A stretch of 64,000 nucleotides of DNA from Orbicella franksi (lineage: Eukaryota). A program made the translations under genes and the position numbers. The stretch lies in NCBI GenBank assembly GCA_964199315.1, contig OZ116701.1, positions 806,001-870,000 of the forward strand, written 5' to 3'. Below, in pieces: positions 51,263 to 63,200 of the stretch. Each line of letters starts with the position of its first letter. Position 1 is the first letter of the stretch. Under the pieces are notes generated by a model. That model did not search any database, was not told the DNA's origin, and was given only the letters and a program-made list of their open reading frames with translations.

Positions 51263-51823
51263 ATGAAAACGGTTTCTGGAGTTCCGCGCCTTACTGATCT
51301 TTGTATTCAGCAAGCTAAGACAAGGTTGCTCACAACAGAATTACTGCTGTCTCTCCCACAAGAGGTTCTTGGAGAGTTATGCGGCACACCTGCTTCACAA
51401 CGTGGCAGCTGTATTGTTCTCATTAACGACACTCCGTTACGAGTAGATGCAAACATGGTTTCTGGTGCAATCTGCGGTTTCCACGTTTTTAGGAGAGAAT
51501 TTTTATTCGGCGAATATCAAACAAATGTGTTTCAGGATTCACTTGAGAGTGCACGATGGAAAAGCTCAGTTCCTCTCAAAGATATTGTGTCCGTCATTGG
51601 AGATTTCTATAAAACCGCACTGGAGGATTTGAATAAAACAAATTGCAATTCGAATCCAAAACATTTGACAGTGCAAAACGGAGAAGAGATTGAAGCATTG
51701 TTATATCAACAAGTTACCCGCTGGGTTTTGAAGCATAACTGTTACTTTTCTCTCGAAATATCAGACGAATTCCTCAAACTCGCCCAAAAAGAAACGATGA
51801 AAGTGAGGATGGCAATACATTAA
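51263..51823 (+). CDS. Intronless 186-aa protein with an N-terminal BC-box/cullin-box-like motif (putative Elongin BC-cullin E3 ligase adaptor)
   Basis: ATG in AAAATGA context and an ordinary globular composition. VPRLTDLCIQQA fits the BC-box pattern (P-x-L-x-x-L-C-x-x-x-hydrophobic) and is followed by LLSLPQEVLGEL. Confidence 0.6.
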   Translation: MKTVSGVPRLTDLCIQQAKTRLLTTELLLSLPQEVLGELCGTPASQRGSCIVLINDTPLRVDANMVSGAICGFHVFRREFLFGEYQTNVFQDSLESARWKSSVPLKDIVSVIGDFYKTALEDLNKTNCNSNPKHLTVQNGEEIEALLYQQVTRWVLKHNCYFSLEISDEFLKLAQKETMKVRMAIH

Positions 51824-54432: not shown

Positions 54433-55866
54433 TTAGAAACGAAAGCCAAGGCCAGCTTTATCAGCCCTTTCTCGAGTTTGCACTTTAGTTTGATCGCTGT
54501 CCAGAGTAGCATACTGGTTGCCTAGATCCATGAAAGCATCTGCATGTTGAAAAGTGGACGGCTCTTGAGTTTTCACTACGTCCACTTCGTTCCCGCGTAT
54601 ATGAAAGGGAAAGTTGGTATTGACTTTGCTTGGTCGCATGATAAAAAGAAGCCCAACGAATCCCAGGAAACATATCAAAGGATTCAGCAGGCGAACGAGT
54701 CGTAAATATTTTAGTTGGTGCAATTCGTCAAACAACGTGGAGAACGTTAGGGCAGAAAGTGGTGGAAAAAGGAACCACACAGAATAAAACTGCTGGAAGT
54801 AATTGTAGAACTTTCTCTTCTCGGGATGCCTTTTGATTGAAAACGAAGTTCCATAAATAAAACAAGCCCAAGCTAATGTTCTCAAACTACGAACAGCAAT
54901 ATCTAGATAGCTTTCATACGGGATGTGTGATACTTCCGAATCAAAGAACGTTTTGAAAACGAATAGAATTTCGTAGGTTAAGATGTAGAGCCAAAGGAAA
55001 ACCTTGAGTCTTACTTGCTTCTCGCGGTCGAAATGACCTGTGGTTATTATCCAGCCGTTTGCTAACAGAATGAGTAGAACAACAAAGATAACTTCGCTTA
55101 TGGAATGAAACAGTTCAGCACCGGTCTGTAAAGGATGACGTGGCATTCCATTGCCAACGTAATGTGTGTAGTAAATATAGTCAAACACCTGAGCGGCTAT
55201 TTCGCAGCTTAGAGTCATCATAAAAAGCTTGTACGCCCGATGGAGCTTACCTTGGTCAAGAAGCTGGCGTGCGAAAATTAAACCGACTACAAATAGCAAA
55301 ATATTGCCTGCCAGGGGCACTGCTTTATATTCGAGACTATGCATTTCTTCAGCCGGTAAGTGTCTCTCCCACGAGTCTCCGTTCGTGAAAGTTAACTCGT
55401 AGGAAATGTCTAAACCGTTCGTACTACTGCAATGGCTTAACACGAAGAACCACCATCGATCGCGTGTCGATTGGAGCCGAAGTTTTCCTGAGCATTTCCG
55501 AAGATTAGTGTCGTTGCTTGAAGAACACTGCATGGAAAAGTTTCCAGTGTTGCTTGAAACGTTAAGCAGTACATTTTGGAATGTAAGCACATCTTCAGCA
55601 TAAGACAGCTTGGAAGAACAATCCATGTCGTCATTAGAGGAAGCAGATTCATAAGAGTTGTGCGAGTAATAAGCGAGGCTTGGACAACATTCATTCGTTA
55701 CTGAATATTCCACATCATATTTTAACTGGCCTATATCTTCGATGAAAGAAAAGTCAGAAACCAGCACCCACTTCTGGCCGTTGCTGATACCTCCGGATAC
55801 ATATTTTCCAGAAACGAGGCAAAAGATCAGTAACAAAAGAATGAAAGCCAAGTAAACTCTTCGCAT
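54433..55866 (-). CDS. TMEM145: TMEM145/GPR180-like GOST-family 7TM protein, intronless, about 477 aa
   Basis: ATG at 55866 gives signal peptide MRRVYLAFILLLLIFCLVSG, then a Cys-containing luminal domain with RDRWWFFVLSHC and WERHLPAEE, and seven hydrophobic helices (ILLANGWIITTG, PYES, FYSVWFL, NFPFH). The ORF track starts at an upstream TTG (55890). Confidence 0.85.
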   Translation of the reverse strand: MRRVYLAFILLLLIFCLVSGKYVSGGISNGQKWVLVSDFSFIEDIGQLKYDVEYSVTNECCPSLAYYSHNSYESASSNDDMDCSSKLSYAEDVLTFQNVLLNVSSNTGNFSMQCSSSNDTNLRKCSGKLRLQSTRDRWWFFVLSHCSSTNGLDISYELTFTNGDSWERHLPAEEMHSLEYKAVPLAGNILLFVVGLIFARQLLDQGKLHRAYKLFMMTLSCEIAAQVFDYIYYTHYVGNGMPRHPLQTGAELFHSISEVIFVVLLILLANGWIITTGHFDREKQVRLKVFLWLYILTYEILFVFKTFFDSEVSHIPYESYLDIAVRSLRTLAWACFIYGTSFSIKRHPEKRKFYNYFQQFYSVWFLFPPLSALTFSTLFDELHQLKYLRLVRLLNPLICFLGFVGLLFIMRPSKVNTNFPFHIRGNEVDVVKTQEPSTFQHADAFMDLGNQYATLDSDQTKVQTRERADKAGLGFRF

Positions 55867-56339
55867 TCTTTGATGAAACCTGTCTGCCAAGGATTTCGAA
55901 CACTATGACACGCCCAAAATGAGTTCATTATTTACACGTCACAGTAAGAACTTAATTTCTTTATCAAGCAAACTTACTAAGAGATATAGCTCGTTTTATC
56001 TCCTAAAAAGTCGTGTAATGGCGAAACTATATGGCAATACTGAGAGATAACCGTCTCCGTGGACCTTAACTGGGAAATCAGGTCATGGCTGGAGGACATA
56101 AGCCGGCTGCGCGCGCATCTCGAGGAGGTGATAGTTGATCCTCATCAACTATCAGCTCATAGAAATCTCGAGCTCGTAATCTAATTGTTAATAGGAACAT
56201 GATTTTAAACCAATCCGCGAGCATATTTTCTTTGGGCTATTTTGTAAAAGAACTTTCCGTTTCATCGAGCACAGATATATTGACACTTCTTAGCTGAGGG
56301 CAGCGAGAAAAATATTTGTGAACTTTGCGACCCCTACGC

Positions 56340-56615: not shown

Positions 56616-57223
56616 AATCCAGGCTAGTTAGAAAATAAAAATCTTAGATCGCAAACAAGGCGATTCACGCAGGGAGGCATATCGCTCGAAATAATATGTG
56701 AATCTGATTTCAGCCGGAGGGTTCAGCAAACTGAAGAACGAGTGTAAACTTACGAAGAGGACACTTCAAATTAAATAAGAAAAAAACAAGAAGTTAAATT
56801 AGAAGAAACGCCATCGCAGTTATATCCACAACCAAATAAAATCCACTGTTTTTCGGGCTTTATCGCAACTGCGTATGGGATGATTTTTCTACTACTTAAA
56901 TGTTTATCCCGCAGTTCAAATATCAGAGAATTTCATCTATTCAGTGTCTATTCTATTTCAAAATATATTTCTTAGAATTTGTACTCCAACAAGAAAAACA
57001 ATCAGTTACAAACAACATAAACAACTTAAATCTGAACATATCATATTTGCAAAATAGCTCTCACTGGAAGGCCAACGCTTAAAAAAATAAATAGAAAGAA
57101 AATTCAGAAAACATTGCATGTTTTGTTGCCGCAGGAACTTCTTTCGAAGATTTTTTGCAGTTGTTACATTGTACTCAGCTGTAACTAGGTTTGCTTGTAG
57201 AGTCAATCGGCTCACTGCTTATT

Positions 57224-60200
57224 TTAGTTTTTTTTAGTGTGATCGATTGTAGGCTGTTTCATCACGTCTATTTTCTTGAGTGGCGCAGACCTTGGTGTTC
57301 CTTGTCTCACTGTGTCCACCCTAGTGAAAACTGTTTTTTCCAGTGAAGGTGTCCATGCAGTTGTTGCCTTTGTTTTACCTTTCAGCGGCTGTAAGTGATT
57401 AGTTTTGTATAGATTAGGAAGAGAATCACTCAGCCTGTCCCCAGAGAGTACTAAGTCAGCTATGCGGCTTCTGTTTAACCCTCCGTGTACTAGTGTGTTC
57501 ATATCATGCTCATTCAATCCATGATTGATGTTTCCTGTGTCTGGTTTACTCCCAGCATCAGCAACACTCAATGACGAGGCTTCTCTACGTTTCCTTTCCC
57601 GGTATCTCCTGACCGCGCGTGTTATAACCCTTGCGGCGACAATCTCGCGGTTTTTATCCATTGTGGTGGTGGTTTGACGGTAATGTGTTACTGCGGGAAA
57701 AACAGCTCGAAATCTTTCCTCCATTCGCTTCATTAGTAAGTTAAATTCCTCGGAATCAAACTCCTCGTAGCCAGTTAAAACTCTCTTTACCAAAACCTGC
57801 AGCAAGTGCAGACAGTAAATCTTGTCGTCTTCGTACAGCGGTATATTCAGGAGCGCGCATGCGGCCTTGTTTGGTTGTTTAATTCTCAGGTTTCCCTTTA
57901 AGGTGTGCAGAAACTCCGACAGATCTTTATAATAAATGTATTGAGTGCTGTCTGGGTCATACAGCATCCAGTGTTGATAGAACAAATCTATGTCCTCTCC
58001 GGTAATTCCAATCTTTTCTTGCTCCATGACGTTGTTATAATTCTCCAGTATTACAGCAACGTACATGTTGATAAGGACTAGAAAAATAATTACAATGAAG
58101 CTTGAAAAGTAACAAACTGCGATCCAGCCATTTCCGCAATTGCCATTCGACAGCCCTTTATAATTCGGGTCACAATCTGGCGGCTGGATCATCAATGGTT
58201 CTAAAACATCGTTCCAGCCCGCCGCAGTCATAAGGCGAAAAATTAACACCATCGAGTTCAAAAACGTTTCAAAATTGACCACGTCATTCAAAGCGCCTGT
58301 CTTCTTGACATGGGCAAAGAAGGACATTCCTATGATGGCGTAGATGAACATAATGAGAAAAAGTATGCCTCCCACATTGAACAGCGCTGGCAAGGAGATT
58401 ATAAGTGAGAACATGAGCCGTTGAATGCCTTTAGCTTTCTCGAAGAAGCGGAGAAGTCTGCCAACTCGGAATACGCGAACAACACGTAAGAGATTAGGTG
58501 TTATGATGATGCCTGTCTTGTTAAGGTTCTCCACAAGTATACCTGCAAAGCAATTAAAAAAAAACGACTTTTATTAAAGAGGCTTGGGAGGTCGTGCTAC
58601 TTTAGGTCAAGTTTGCGTCAAACCAGTGGCCCATAAAGCCAGTTTCTGTAGCATGAAGCGACTAGGAGTATGTATACTACCCCCCTGGATGGGATGCTGG
58701 TCCATCGTAGGGTTACCCCCCAGCATTAGATTCGCCGGTACCCATTTATACACCCGGGTGAAGAGAGGCACTGTGAGAATAAAGTGTCTTTGTCCAAGAA
58801 CACAACGCATCGTCCCAGGCCAGGGCTCCAACCCGGACTACTCAAGTCCAGCGAGCTAGCCATCATGCCAGCGCCTCTCGCTATATTTAGACCACCTTAA
58901 AAATAAAATGACACTTGTAAAAAAGCCATCGGAACGACAGACTGTGATCCATAGATAAACTGTAAAACATAAGGAAAAGAAAGATAGTACAATACCTCGG
59001 CAAAATGAAATCACGAGCATTTAGATTTAGTTGTTACGAGCGTGGATACGAATTCTGTTGATGAATATTCTCTTTTAATTTGAACCTTAGAAAATGTTCA
59101 GTTTGACATTTGGAATTCATAATCTTCCGCAAATTTCAAATCTAGGTAAAGAACAACAACTCAAATAGTAGCGTACAAGATGGTGCGAGTTTCCAGTAAC
59201 TAGTCCGTAGTCATTGGCAACCAGACACATCTCAGTGCGATAAAGCACTCGAAAGACGGGTTCCCGGCATAAAACACTTCAATATCCACAGTTTGAATAA
59301 AAAGTAACTTATATACTAGTTATGCAACGTTCTCTCGTGGTATACCATGGATTATCCCACGAGTCACTTGTATTTTCTCGGTATACGACGAGTGTGTACT
59401 GATACCAAGAAAATACATGTGACAAGTTTGATATTCCGTGGTATACCACAAGAGAGCGTCACATAACTACGCCGTAGAAAATACAGTGATCAACACAATC
59501 AATGCGACATACGCGTGGCGCGCGATGGGAAGGTTGAGTGTTATACTGTCAAATATAAAACGGCTTTCCTGTATTTTGATTGGCTGTATTCTCTATGGCA
59601 TGGCATAAATTTCGATATCCTGACAATTTCTTACCTACTATCGACAATACGACAATGACGAAGTCAAACACATTCCAGCGCTGTTGAAAATATCCCCATC
59701 TCAGGGCGATAATTCTTAGTATCGCCTCAATGATAAATATACAGGTGAATACGATGTTGAAGTATTGTGATGGACACATAGGGCGATCTCTTGTTAAGGA
59801 CAAACACGATGTAATGTCTTAATAAGCTACCAGAAAGGTTATTATAGGTGAAATTTCTACATTATTTTTGTAGTTGTTTTTTTTCGAGCATTTTTATCTT
59901 GAGTCCCTGGCTCGGTAGAACGGGCAACCACTTCCTGTGTCACGTCTTTAAATAAATTATAACTACTACCATTACTAGAAAACTGGCTTGTTACCAAGTT
60001 CTCAGTTGCCCAGGGAAAGGTTAAGTCTTTTCCTGTCTCAGGAGACTGGAAAAGACAGATGCCTTATCGGTACCAGTGCATGTGGCTTTTGTTTGCGACT
60101 ATAACGCTGCTCCCCTCCCGGGAGGATGGAATGTCTGATAGGGTTTTCAAACCATGGGTGAAAAGAGACACTGCATCAGTAAAGTGTTTGGCCCAAGGAC

Positions 60201-63200
60201 ACAAAATCATGGCCCCAGCCAGAAGTTGAACCTGGACGGCTAGATACAGTATCGAGTGGACTAACCACTAGAACAACAAGTGTAAACCAGAAACTTATTT
60301 CACCATTTTTAAGTGACTAGTGTACTCTCTCAAGGCGTCTCGTCTTTTAAGGCTAATATTGGAGGGATGTCTTGCTAAAAACGTAAAAATACTCCAAAAT
60401 AGTTGAATTAAAGGATATCTAACACCAATGTAACCTGAGGTGTCTGATCATAATGCTGTACCATCATCACTATCATGTTCACTGTGATCACCAAGATAAT
60501 AAAGATCTCAAACTTGCGATTTTCCACCATGTCAAACACCACAGCTTGATAGCGGTTCTGTATTGAGGGAAAATTGTCAAAGAGATGAGTACTAGCAATA
60601 TATTTTTTAAATTTATTTTCCAGTGAGCGATGTTCAGTACAGACTGTGTGGGATCTGTTTTACGAAGAATCTTTGATCGGAATCCCGTCATTACCTCTGG
60701 TCTTGCTATTTTCTTTTTCGGCTTCTTAGCTGCTGCGTTTTTTATCGCATTCATCCAACTCCTCTGGTTTGGAGTCAAAAAAATATGTACGGAACCCAAC
60801 ACCTCCATCTGTTGGCAAGAATACATTAAAACAACAGAGTCAATATTGTAAACTTTGTTTTGTATTCACATAATCAACGTTAAAGAAAAGCACAGCTGGA
60901 GGGGAACAATAATATTGTTTTAAATTTCACTAGCTAAGAGTCGAGCACGTTTTAATTCGGTTTAATTGACGTACAAACAAAAAATGTGTATGGTTGCTGA
61001 CCTGTTGCTTGAGTTGATTGAAGTTGTCGATGATGACACCGATGAAAAGATTTAAGACAAACAAAGATCCAGAAATAATGAACACAATGAAGAACATGTA
61101 AGCAGCCATATTGTTCTCCCTCACGGGCTGTTGATCCACCTGTAAGTGATAAGTAAACAAGCAATAAACAAACAACATGCGAGTTAATACAGAGTGATAG
61201 TAAACAGCAACTCTTGCTTTGAAAGTTGCATTGCATGAAGTTTCAGTCCAGCACCTTTCTCAAATGAATCAATGTACGTCTTTTTGTTTCTTTTTGAAAA
61301 GCCTCAATTTCAAAAAAAATGACACTATTATTATCTGGCATTTGTACAGCGACTTTCAAAACTTTCCAAAACATACCTAACAATGTCTTCTTATGCTGCT
61401 TTAAACATATCTACCACGACAATGACAGGAGTAACGAAAAAAGAAAGAGACAACATGGCTCAAGATCCGTCACTTACAGAGCATAGACTATTACTAACAC
61501 TTTCAAGTCATTGAAGAAAAAAACTTTGTTTCGTGAGACTTCCGCTAAGATTATTGACAGCAGCGTAAAATGAAATCGTTAGGTACGGAAGTTTTAAACT
61601 TCAGAGGTCTCGTGTTATTGAAAGCGATAGTAACTAAAAGCTTCATTAGTTTTCTAACGCGGAAATTAAAGTCGCTACGTCAAGGATGGCGAATCTTGTG
61701 AAATTCAGTCCTAATTTTTCTTGTTAGTTTTTTTGTATTCCCTCGTAATCACATCAAGCGTTGTTCCTCTTTTCTTCATTATTACCTCCACCAGTGGTAT
61801 TTGTTTTTATTTAAGACAACTTTAATTTTAAGGAAATGAGACTTCCTTCGATTTGAAGGTAACTTAGCATATCACACAAAACTCCTTTACAATATAGTAT
61901 GACTTTTGAATGTTAAATCGTGTTGGTTCGAGGATGGGTGTTAGTTGAACACGGAGACCAGAAAAGACGAAGCAAAGATAAATGTTACCAACCTTAGTAG
62001 CATCAATAGCGTCCTCCATAACCTCCATCCATCCCTCAAAAGTAGCCTGAAAGGCAACAGGTTATAATTATCTGCCTTCCTTTTTCCCTCAGGACCATCC
62101 ACATCAGCTACTATTGAATCTGTTTTTTTTTTTTAGAATCCCATTGTATTATTTTTATTCAGATTTTAACAGTTGGTGTGATATCTCACGATTTTTACCA
62201 ACTTAACTGAGTGGAGATGCCCCTCTTCTGCGCTATCAAATATTTTTTCCATTGACACCTGAATTATATATAACTATATTATTAAGTTGACCTGTCGCTC
62301 TATGATGTTGTTAGTACTGCTATTGTGCCAACTCTTTAGAAAAGTACATCATGATTTCCTTCAAAATATTCGAAATACGGAATCTTTAACTTCTTAATTA
62401 AACATACCACTTGAAGAAGTGCCAAAAATCCGTTGCCAGAATTATCAAAGTTAACGTTTGAGTTAATCCAGCGGTCTCCTCTTGCAAGGCATGCGGACTT
62501 GTTAGCCACTACAGAAGCGTCATACTTAACGCCGCGCGCGTCGACACACTTGTAGAATTTCCCGCCAAAAAGATTGACGCCCATGATACTAAAAATAAGC
62601 CAGAATACCAGGCACACGAGAAGAACATTGGCGATTCCGGGTATGGCGTGAAACAGAGAGCTGATCACCACCTGAAAAATAAAGCCAAGAGGCTTAAAAA
62701 TGTCACAGTCCGCATTAATCGACGACCATATTAACATAATTTGTCACAGACCATTTTCTTCTCGGAACAGACAAGGTCCGTGGACAAATATCCTAGCATA
62801 TTTTCGTGCCAAATGGTGGCTATCGTTTATATAACACGATGTATGTTGTTCCCAGTAACGTTCAAAGGATAGCAAGCCGACATAAAGTGTAGGCGTTATT
62901 TCATCCTATATACTAGTGTGCTGAGTTGTCACCGATTGGAATTTTTTCCTTGTGTATCTAAACCGGATCCCAGAGGGGTCACGTTTTGGAGTTTTCTTTT
63001 ATGGCCAATTCCCTGCACGAGGCGCACCTGCAAGGAATCATGGTGGTTGCAAAAATAATATATATCCAGTCCAAGATGATGGAAACAACTACCGTGATTC
63101 CCTGCGGGCGTGCCTTATGGAGGAAATTGGCCATTTGCCTTACATGTACTAAAAGCTATCTGGTTGAAAAGTGCACTGGTTGAAGAAGGTGGCGTGCTTC

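Follow-up and report, generated by a model that had tools for sequence, protein, structure and literature searches.

Minor-class (U12-type) introns have reportedly been known since 1999 from the genes of voltage-gated sodium (Nav) and calcium (Cav) channels, jellyfish included, through work said to be that of Spafford et al. and of Wu & Krainer. One such intron, located in segment S1 of domain I (DI), is a conserved feature of both Nav and Cav genes (Fux et al. 2018, PMC6259924). A different kind of intron, the U2-like "AT-AC II" intron, also begins with AT and ends with AC, and 10 of the 15 human examples are in SCN genes (Sheth et al. 2006, PMC1557818). Cnidarians have Nav2 channels, including NvNav2.1-2.5 of Nematostella (Gur Barzilai et al. 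2012, PMC3809514). Here we describe an AT-AC intron in domain IV (DIV) of a Nav2-type gene of the stony coral Orbicella franksi, at positions 59767-60418 (minus strand) of a 64,000-nt stretch of contig OZ116701.1 (hereafter "the window"; positions refer to the window unless another locus is named). Our literature search, which did not take in the 1999 Spafford and Wu & Krainer papers, found only the DI S1 U12 intron described and did not find the DIV position.

The host gene spans 57224 to beyond the window end. Its selectivity-filter residues in domains I-IV are D (TLDFWE), E (CGEWIE), E (TFEGWM), and A (TAAGWN), with the DI and DII pore residues read past the window end, in locus L014. Because of this DEEA pore, the gene is on its sequence a Nav2-type four-domain channel and not one of the sodium-selective DKEA/DEKA channels. 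It resembles the known cnidarian Nav2 channels in its filter, in the presence of several paralogues per genome, and in the DIV intron itself, which recurs in one Nematostella gene (see below). However, Nematostella is a sea anemone, whereas the window gene belongs to a scleractinian and is known here from sequence and RNA contigs.

The exon that encodes DIV S1 and the first part of the S1-S2 loop (60419..60557, minus strand, 139 nt) contributes 46 residues plus the G of a split Glu codon. Its start at 60557 is set by the acceptor aatacag/AACCGC (the slash marks the splice site), its first residue (Asn) aligns to human Nav1.5 N1515, and it ends in ...GTG TTA G at 60419. The bases right after this G are ATATCCTTTAA; reading through into the intron gives GAT ATC CTT TAA (Asp-Ile-Leu-stop, with the TAA at 60410-60408), and there is no in-frame GT donor that would restore homology. 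What follows the exon is a U12-type 5' splice site, ATATCCTTT (60410..60418, minus strand), which matches the consensus quoted in PMC6259924 at 9/9 positions. The intron that it opens is 652 nt long and in phase 1. Toward its other end lies the branch-site motif TCCTTAAC (59793..59800, minus strand), 27 nt before the intron-terminal AC (59767..59768, minus strand; ...CCATCAC/AATAC); the branch A is 27-28 nt away from the 3' end. No AC before the one ending at 59767 (...CCATCAC/AATACTTC) would restore the frame, and the sequence leading up to this AC (...AAGAGATCGCCCTATGTGTCCATCAC/) is of mixed composition, without a polypyrimidine tract. The next exon, for DIV S2-S3 (59635..59766, minus strand, 132 nt), starts AA TAC TTC AAC. 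Joining G/AA yields Glu and restores the peptide ...VTLVL-E-YFNIVF (VLEYFNIVF), and the two exons together amount to 139 + 132 = 271 nt, the same length as a single vertebrate exon. The intron with its boundaries had been proposed in a first-pass annotation made from the letters of the window alone, and the reanalysis bears it out, from the lack of a usable GT and the perfect donor and branch site to the restored peptide and phases, with every coordinate correct (exon 60557-60419, intron 60418-59767).

It should be noted that the motifs alone are uninformative. The 8-mer ATATCCTT occurs 3 times in the 64-kb window and TCCTTAAC twice, against 2.67 expected copies of each. We considered the other copies (at 19030, 39780, and 29707) as possible further U12 introns and rejected them as chance occurrences, given that they have no coding context. 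The signal at 59767-60418 is non-random not by virtue of 8-mer frequency, but because the pair of motifs sits exactly at the sole exon boundary without a usable GT, and because this arrangement recurs in nine homologous genes.

Transcript evidence comes from Logan RNA contigs of three independent studies (X1, from 2017; X2; and X5, from 2024) and one raw-read run (X22), aligned to 57100-62800. Contigs of X1 and X5 both contain a joint from 59765 to 60418 that skips 652 nt and, with 1 nt of ambiguity, corresponds to an intron at 59767-60418 with AT..AC termini on the minus strand, which is exactly the junction predicted between 60419 and 59766. The other five joints in the region are all CT..AC on the plus strand, thus GT..AG on the minus strand, and place introns at approximately 58543-59634, 60558-60694, 60809-61001, 61138-61990, and 62046-62406.

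The genome also encodes small nuclear RNAs (snRNAs) of the minor spliceosome. There are two copies each of the genes for U12 (100 and 94 bits), U6atac (113 and 111 bits), and U11 (90 and 88 bits), all over the Rfam gathering cut-off, and both U12 copies have TAAGGAA at nucleotides 19-25, the complement of TTCCTTA and the stretch to which TCCTTAAC could pair. The locus thus combines the features by which an AT-AC U12 intron is recognized, namely a /ATATCCTTT donor, the branch motif TTCCTTAAC near the 3' end, a terminal AC, the junction in RNA, and the encoded snRNAs. If the steps of the established U12 pathway apply, U11 and then U6atac would pair with ATATCCTTT, U12 would pair with TCCTTAAC, and the AC 27 nt downstream of the branch motif would serve as the 3' splice site, joining G/AA. 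Alternatively, the intron could be removed by the major (U2-type) spliceosome, as are the vertebrate SCN AT-AC II introns. U2-dependent AT-AC introns do exist and are concentrated in sodium-channel genes, and a long distance between branch site and 3' splice site is more typical of U2-type introns. The coral 5' splice site, however, is ATATCCTTT and not ATAAGT, the branch motif matches TCCTTAAC perfectly and is complementary to the U12 snRNA of the same genome, no pyrimidine tract precedes the AC, and both U12 motifs are conserved in nine homologous introns. We consider removal by the major spliceosome very unlikely.

There are several points that weigh against assigning the intron to the minor spliceosome. 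The AT-AC junction comes from assembled contigs whose overhangs past the joint are only 30 and 24 nt, and the raw-read run gave 2 reads over the whole of 57100-62800. The snRNA search covered U11, U12, and U6atac, and the dependence on the minor spliceosome is deduced from motifs and U12 complementarity. In addition, 27-28 nt from branch site to 3' splice site is at the upper edge of the range used by classifiers (a window of ~8-30 or 8-38 nt from the 3' end); the accepted distance for U12 introns is 8-30 nt in Sheth 2006 (PMC1557818) and 10-20 nt in older schemes. Even so, we think it very probable that 59767-60418 is a genuine U12-dependent AT-AC intron, in phase 1 within the codon of the Glu next to VTLVL in the extracellular DIV S1-S2 loop, and that it is a character of anthozoan and placozoan Nav2 genes distinct from the vertebrate AT-AC introns.

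The contigs of all three studies also include RNAs in which this intron is left in place. The spliced form is not among the assembled contigs of X2. Instead, X2 contig 5 extends from the last exon over the spliced intron 58543-59634, continues through the exon 59635-59766, and enters the AT-AC intron up to 60101. X2 contig 8 covers the AT-AC intron from 60063 to its donor, then the exon 60419-60557, and crosses the spliced intron 60558-60694. The two contigs thus reach into the AT-AC intron from opposite ends and share a stretch in its middle. Unspliced pieces of the intron are also present in X1 (contig 3) and X5 (contigs 11-12), and RNA depth is zero over the nonrepetitive parts of the neighbouring introns. 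Because the flanking introns have been removed in the same contigs, the X2 contigs represent partly processed transcripts that keep solely the AT-AC intron, and not genomic DNA. At the contig level, removal of this intron appears slower or less complete than that of the neighbouring U2-type introns, and its kinetics are presumably slow; abundance is poorly gauged by contig depth, which tells against any estimate of retention drawn from that depth. RNAs that keep only the AT-AC intron, although abundant enough for assembly, would be nonproductive, because the TAA three codons into the intron would end translation. The suggestion in the first-pass annotation that the intron may limit the rate of channel expression fits this selective retention.

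A second minor-class intron is predicted in the same gene, at the conserved DI S1 site. It lies outside the window (window-equivalent 76700-77178, minus strand; G000:C4:882700-883178; L039), is in phase 2, and belongs to the GT-AG subtype (CA/GTATCCTTTGG ... TTCTTTAAC-9 nt-AG). The teleost Nav1 gene of Denticeps (L021) likewise has a U12-type intron in DI S1, with AT-AC termini and the donor ATATCCTTT, again in phase 2 (ATATCCTTTTCT ... TTTCCTTGAC-11 nt-AC). The DI S1 intron of Nav and Cav genes resembles the coral DIV intron in gene family, intron class, and consensus motifs. The two differ in domain and phase (domain I and phase 2, vs. DIV S1-S2 and phase 1), and in distribution, given that the DIV intron is absent from coral Cav genes and from the bilaterian Nav genes sampled, whereas the DI S1 intron is conserved in both families. 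They also differ in the spacing from branch motif to 3' splice site, which is 9-11 nt in the DI S1 introns of coral and teleost, but 27-33 nt in 6/9 copies of the DIV intron. With two minor-class introns in one gene, and the DIV intron visibly retained, cnidarian Nav2 offers a place to test the limits that minor splicing may set on channel expression outside vertebrates. As a separate observation, the U12-type DI S1 intron of Nav2 in the hemichordate Ptychodera flava (L023:13757-14041) has apparent noncanonical AT-AA termini (ATATCCTTTTCA ... TTCCTTGAC-9 nt-AA).

The first-pass annotation had equated the coral intron with an AT-AC intron in domain IV of vertebrate SCN genes, kept since the cnidarian-bilaterian ancestor. 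There is some basis for this, in that vertebrate Nav1 genes have two AT-AC introns (both are present in the teleost gene), and the boundaries around the coral intron are strikingly conserved. In the teleost, residues 1484-1573 plus 1 nt form one 271-nt exon, covering DIV S1-S3, that begins with an Asn aligning with coral residue 1 and human Nav1.5 N1515 and ends in phase 1, as does the coral exon pair. However, the coral intron site corresponds to teleost residue 1530 (approximately residue 1561 of human Nav1.5), well within this uninterrupted exon, and neither of the teleost AT-AC introns is in DIV S1-S2. The second of them, a phase 0 intron at codon 1448, separates the DIII S6 exon from the linker exon of 105 nt and is two introns upstream of the coral site. 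It has the sequence ATAAGTACTCAT ... TTTATTTCCTTTAC and is U2-like (ATAAGT...TTTAC), thus of the AT-AC II class; we take it to be the counterpart of SCN4A intron 21 and SCN5A intron 25. The vertebrate AT-AC II intron and the coral intron are alike in having AT-AC termini and in falling within the 3' third of a sodium-channel gene. They differ in position (the vertebrate intron is at the boundary of DIII S6 and the III-IV linker), and the coral intron has neither the ATAAGT donor nor the pyrimidine tract that precedes the vertebrate AC. The coral intron that does occupy the vertebrate AT-AC II position (60809..61001, minus strand; RNA joint) is GT-AG.

The remaining bilaterian genes agree with the teleost. 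No intron interrupts the coral site in Ptychodera (hemichordate, DEEA), Tubulanus (nemertean, DEEA), or the amphioxus Branchiostoma lanceolatum, all of which have the same 271-nt exon, nor in the arthropod Nav2 genes of Limulus (horseshoe crab) and the wasp Chelonus ("60E"), which have a different intron earlier in S1. The Nav2 gene of the calcareous sponge Sycon ciliatum also has the 271-nt exon with no intron at the site. The uninterrupted exon is thus 271 nt in 5 of the 7 intron-free genes, the arthropod exons starting at another, upstream intron. Overall, the statement that vertebrate SCN genes have AT-AC introns holds, but its placement of one in DIV S1-S2 does not, and the proposed identity fails on position (by two introns), on spliceosome class, on the GT-AG nature of the coral counterpart, and on the uninterrupted site in every bilaterian gene sampled. 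We regard descent of the coral and vertebrate AT-AC introns from one ancestral intron as highly improbable. Shared origin of the DIV U12 intron with Cav genes was also considered and rejected; the four coral Cav genes have no intron at the equivalent site (46/47), and their introns are at other positions, near Nav-equivalent residues ~33/34 and ~69/70.

In contrast to these genes, the intron recurs in other Nav genes of this coral, in a sea anemone, and in placozoans. Homologues were found by protein search, and each protein was mapped onto its own gene locus by exact-match chaining. There are six Nav-type genes in the coral genome, one of which is a tandem neighbour ~35 kb away. In each of them, the donor /ATATCCTTT interrupts the same codon in phase 1, TTCCTT(A/G)AC follows, and the intron ends in AC, despite protein identity of only ~40-65% around the site. 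The intron is older than the six-fold expansion of Nav genes in the coral. The same donor 9-mer is common to the six coral paralogues, one Nematostella gene, and two Trichoplax genes. In Nematostella (L026) the intron reads GTG CTT A/ATATCCTTTT ... CACCTTGAC-21 nt-CCAC/, in Trichoplax sp. H2 (L022) GTT TTA G/ATATCCTTTT ... TCTCCTTGAC-30 nt-ATCTAC/, with exons again of 139 + 132 nt, and in T. adhaerens (23340; L027) GTA CTT G/ATATCCTTTT ... TTCCTTAAC-33 nt-CAGCAC/. From the end of the branch motif to the 3' splice site, the six coral paralogues measure 27, 29, 31, 12, 21, and 30 nt. The spacing is 27-33 nt in 6/9 copies of the intron, the remainder having 12 and 21 nt, and in those six copies it is unusually long, at or beyond the usual U12 range. 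The Nematostella intron also contains a second copy of CTTAATATCCTT at L026:22014, 74 nt downstream of the real donor; this copy may have arisen by a small duplication or may act as an alternative donor.

A practical consequence is that public gene models go wrong at this site, as the first-pass annotation had anticipated for predictors limited to GT-AG introns. Three deposited models bypass the AT-AC junction: EDO46797.1 of Nematostella (L026:21933-22326), RDD37663.1 of Trichoplax sp. H2 (L022:12294-12517), and XP_002110570.1 of T. adhaerens (L027:12976-13680). In each case, the GT of a conserved Val codon 7 nt upstream was paired with a nearby AG to make a false GT-AG intron. As a result, the Nematostella model lacks 3 residues, that of Trichoplax sp. 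H2 has 7 residues inserted, and that of T. adhaerens contains a patch that does not align. Nav2 models of three early-branching animals therefore have errors of 3-7 residues within the DIV voltage sensor, and cloning or modelling of these channels should take the AT-AC junction.

Among the taxa sampled, the intron is restricted to anthozoans and placozoans, and absent from bilaterian Nav1 and Nav2, from one sponge, and from Cav paralogues. In a quick maximum-likelihood tree of 25 proteins, bilaterian Nav1 and Nav2 form one clade (SH-aLRT, the Shimodaira-Hasegawa-like approximate likelihood ratio test, 99), with Nematostella, Trichoplax, and the coral fragment outside it and Sycon below them. 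On this tree the intron entails two changes, gain after the sponge split and loss along the bilaterian stem. When the intron-bearing genes are constrained to a single clade, a grouping unsupported by the free tree, the log-likelihood drops by 10.3 units, and the approximately unbiased (AU) test does not reject the constraint (p = 0.147). Because of this last result, the origin may have been either the gain and loss just described or a single gain in a lineage of placozoans and cnidarians, and the order of gain and loss is our reconstruction. To be set against any such scenario is thin taxon sampling, in that each bilaterian lineage is represented by a single gene, sponges by a single species, and medusozoans, ctenophores, and choanoflagellates by no locus.

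Loss of U12 introns far exceeds gain, which is nearly nonexistent in metazoans (Lin et al. 2010). This imbalance favours an early origin followed by loss, although the sponge gene shows no trace of the intron. We see a gain that occurred once, in an ancestor of Placozoa and Cnidaria, with the long spacing kept since, as a tentative and rather unlikely scenario. If true, it would be a rare documented U12 gain in animals and an independent character for the contested hypothesis that these two phyla are sister groups. Independent origin in cnidarians and placozoans, by parallel insertion or by activation of a cryptic U12 site at the same codon, would deprive the intron of historical signal. Such an origin would fit the absence of the intron from the sponge and from every bilaterian sampled, as well as the one U2-to-U12 conversion via cryptic sites documented in Diptera. 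However, codon, phase, donor 9-mer, and the exon lengths of 139 + 132 nt are identical in the coral and Trichoplax sp. H2, and U12 gain is reportedly near-absent in metazoans; we consider independent origin very improbable. More generally, given that U12 introns are almost never gained, an intron common only to cnidarians and placozoans is informative, either on loss along the bilaterian stem or on the relationship of the two phyla.

Taken as a whole, the intron is of a known kind, lies at a position that we did not find described, and does not overturn current understanding. The DIV position may possibly have been tabulated already, for Polyorchis or in U12 databases. What is newly added is the junction in RNA contigs from two studies, the selective retention, the restriction to anthozoans and placozoans among the taxa sampled, and the long spacing between branch site and 3' splice site, along with the findings that the homology with the vertebrate intron is wrong and that three public models are mis-spliced.

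Other parts of the gene (all on the minus strand) were also delimited. The last coding exon (57224..58542) covers the remainder of DIV S3, then S4-S6, including the pore Ala (MTAAGW), and the C-terminal domain. It is preceded by the phase 1 GT-AG intron 58543..59634 (RNA joint), which contains interspersed repeats. Upstream of the S1 exon, the GT-AG intron 60558..60694 served as an internal control, with RNA joints in X1, X2, and X5. The III-IV linker exon (60695..60808) encodes IFL where vertebrates have IFM.

Within the intron 58543..59634, a ~190-bp interspersed repeat (58639-58828) has >3000 candidate copies in the genome at ~90-92% identity and X1 RNA contig depth of up to ~52,000; it is probably similar to a short interspersed nuclear element (SINE) or a miniature inverted-repeat transposable element (MITE). 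A palindromic element at 59326-59460, with RNA contig depth of 300-650, has sub-threshold matches to mir-552 and mir-624 on both strands; it is more like the hairpin of a repeat than a demonstrated microRNA. A search for RNA genes within the introns found only these sub-threshold microRNA-like palindrome matches, and no transfer RNA. Elsewhere in the genome, a 1750-aa open reading frame (ORF) without introns (L013:651-5903; G000:C14:4481651-4486903) encodes a four-domain channel homologue that is 32% identical to the Nav last exon; an intronless gene in an intron-rich family suggests a retrogene or some other oddity. Downstream of the channel gene, the window contains two long single-exon ORFs, one of 485 aa (54433-55890, minus strand) that is multi-pass membrane-like in appearance, and one of 186 aa (51263-51823, plus strand).

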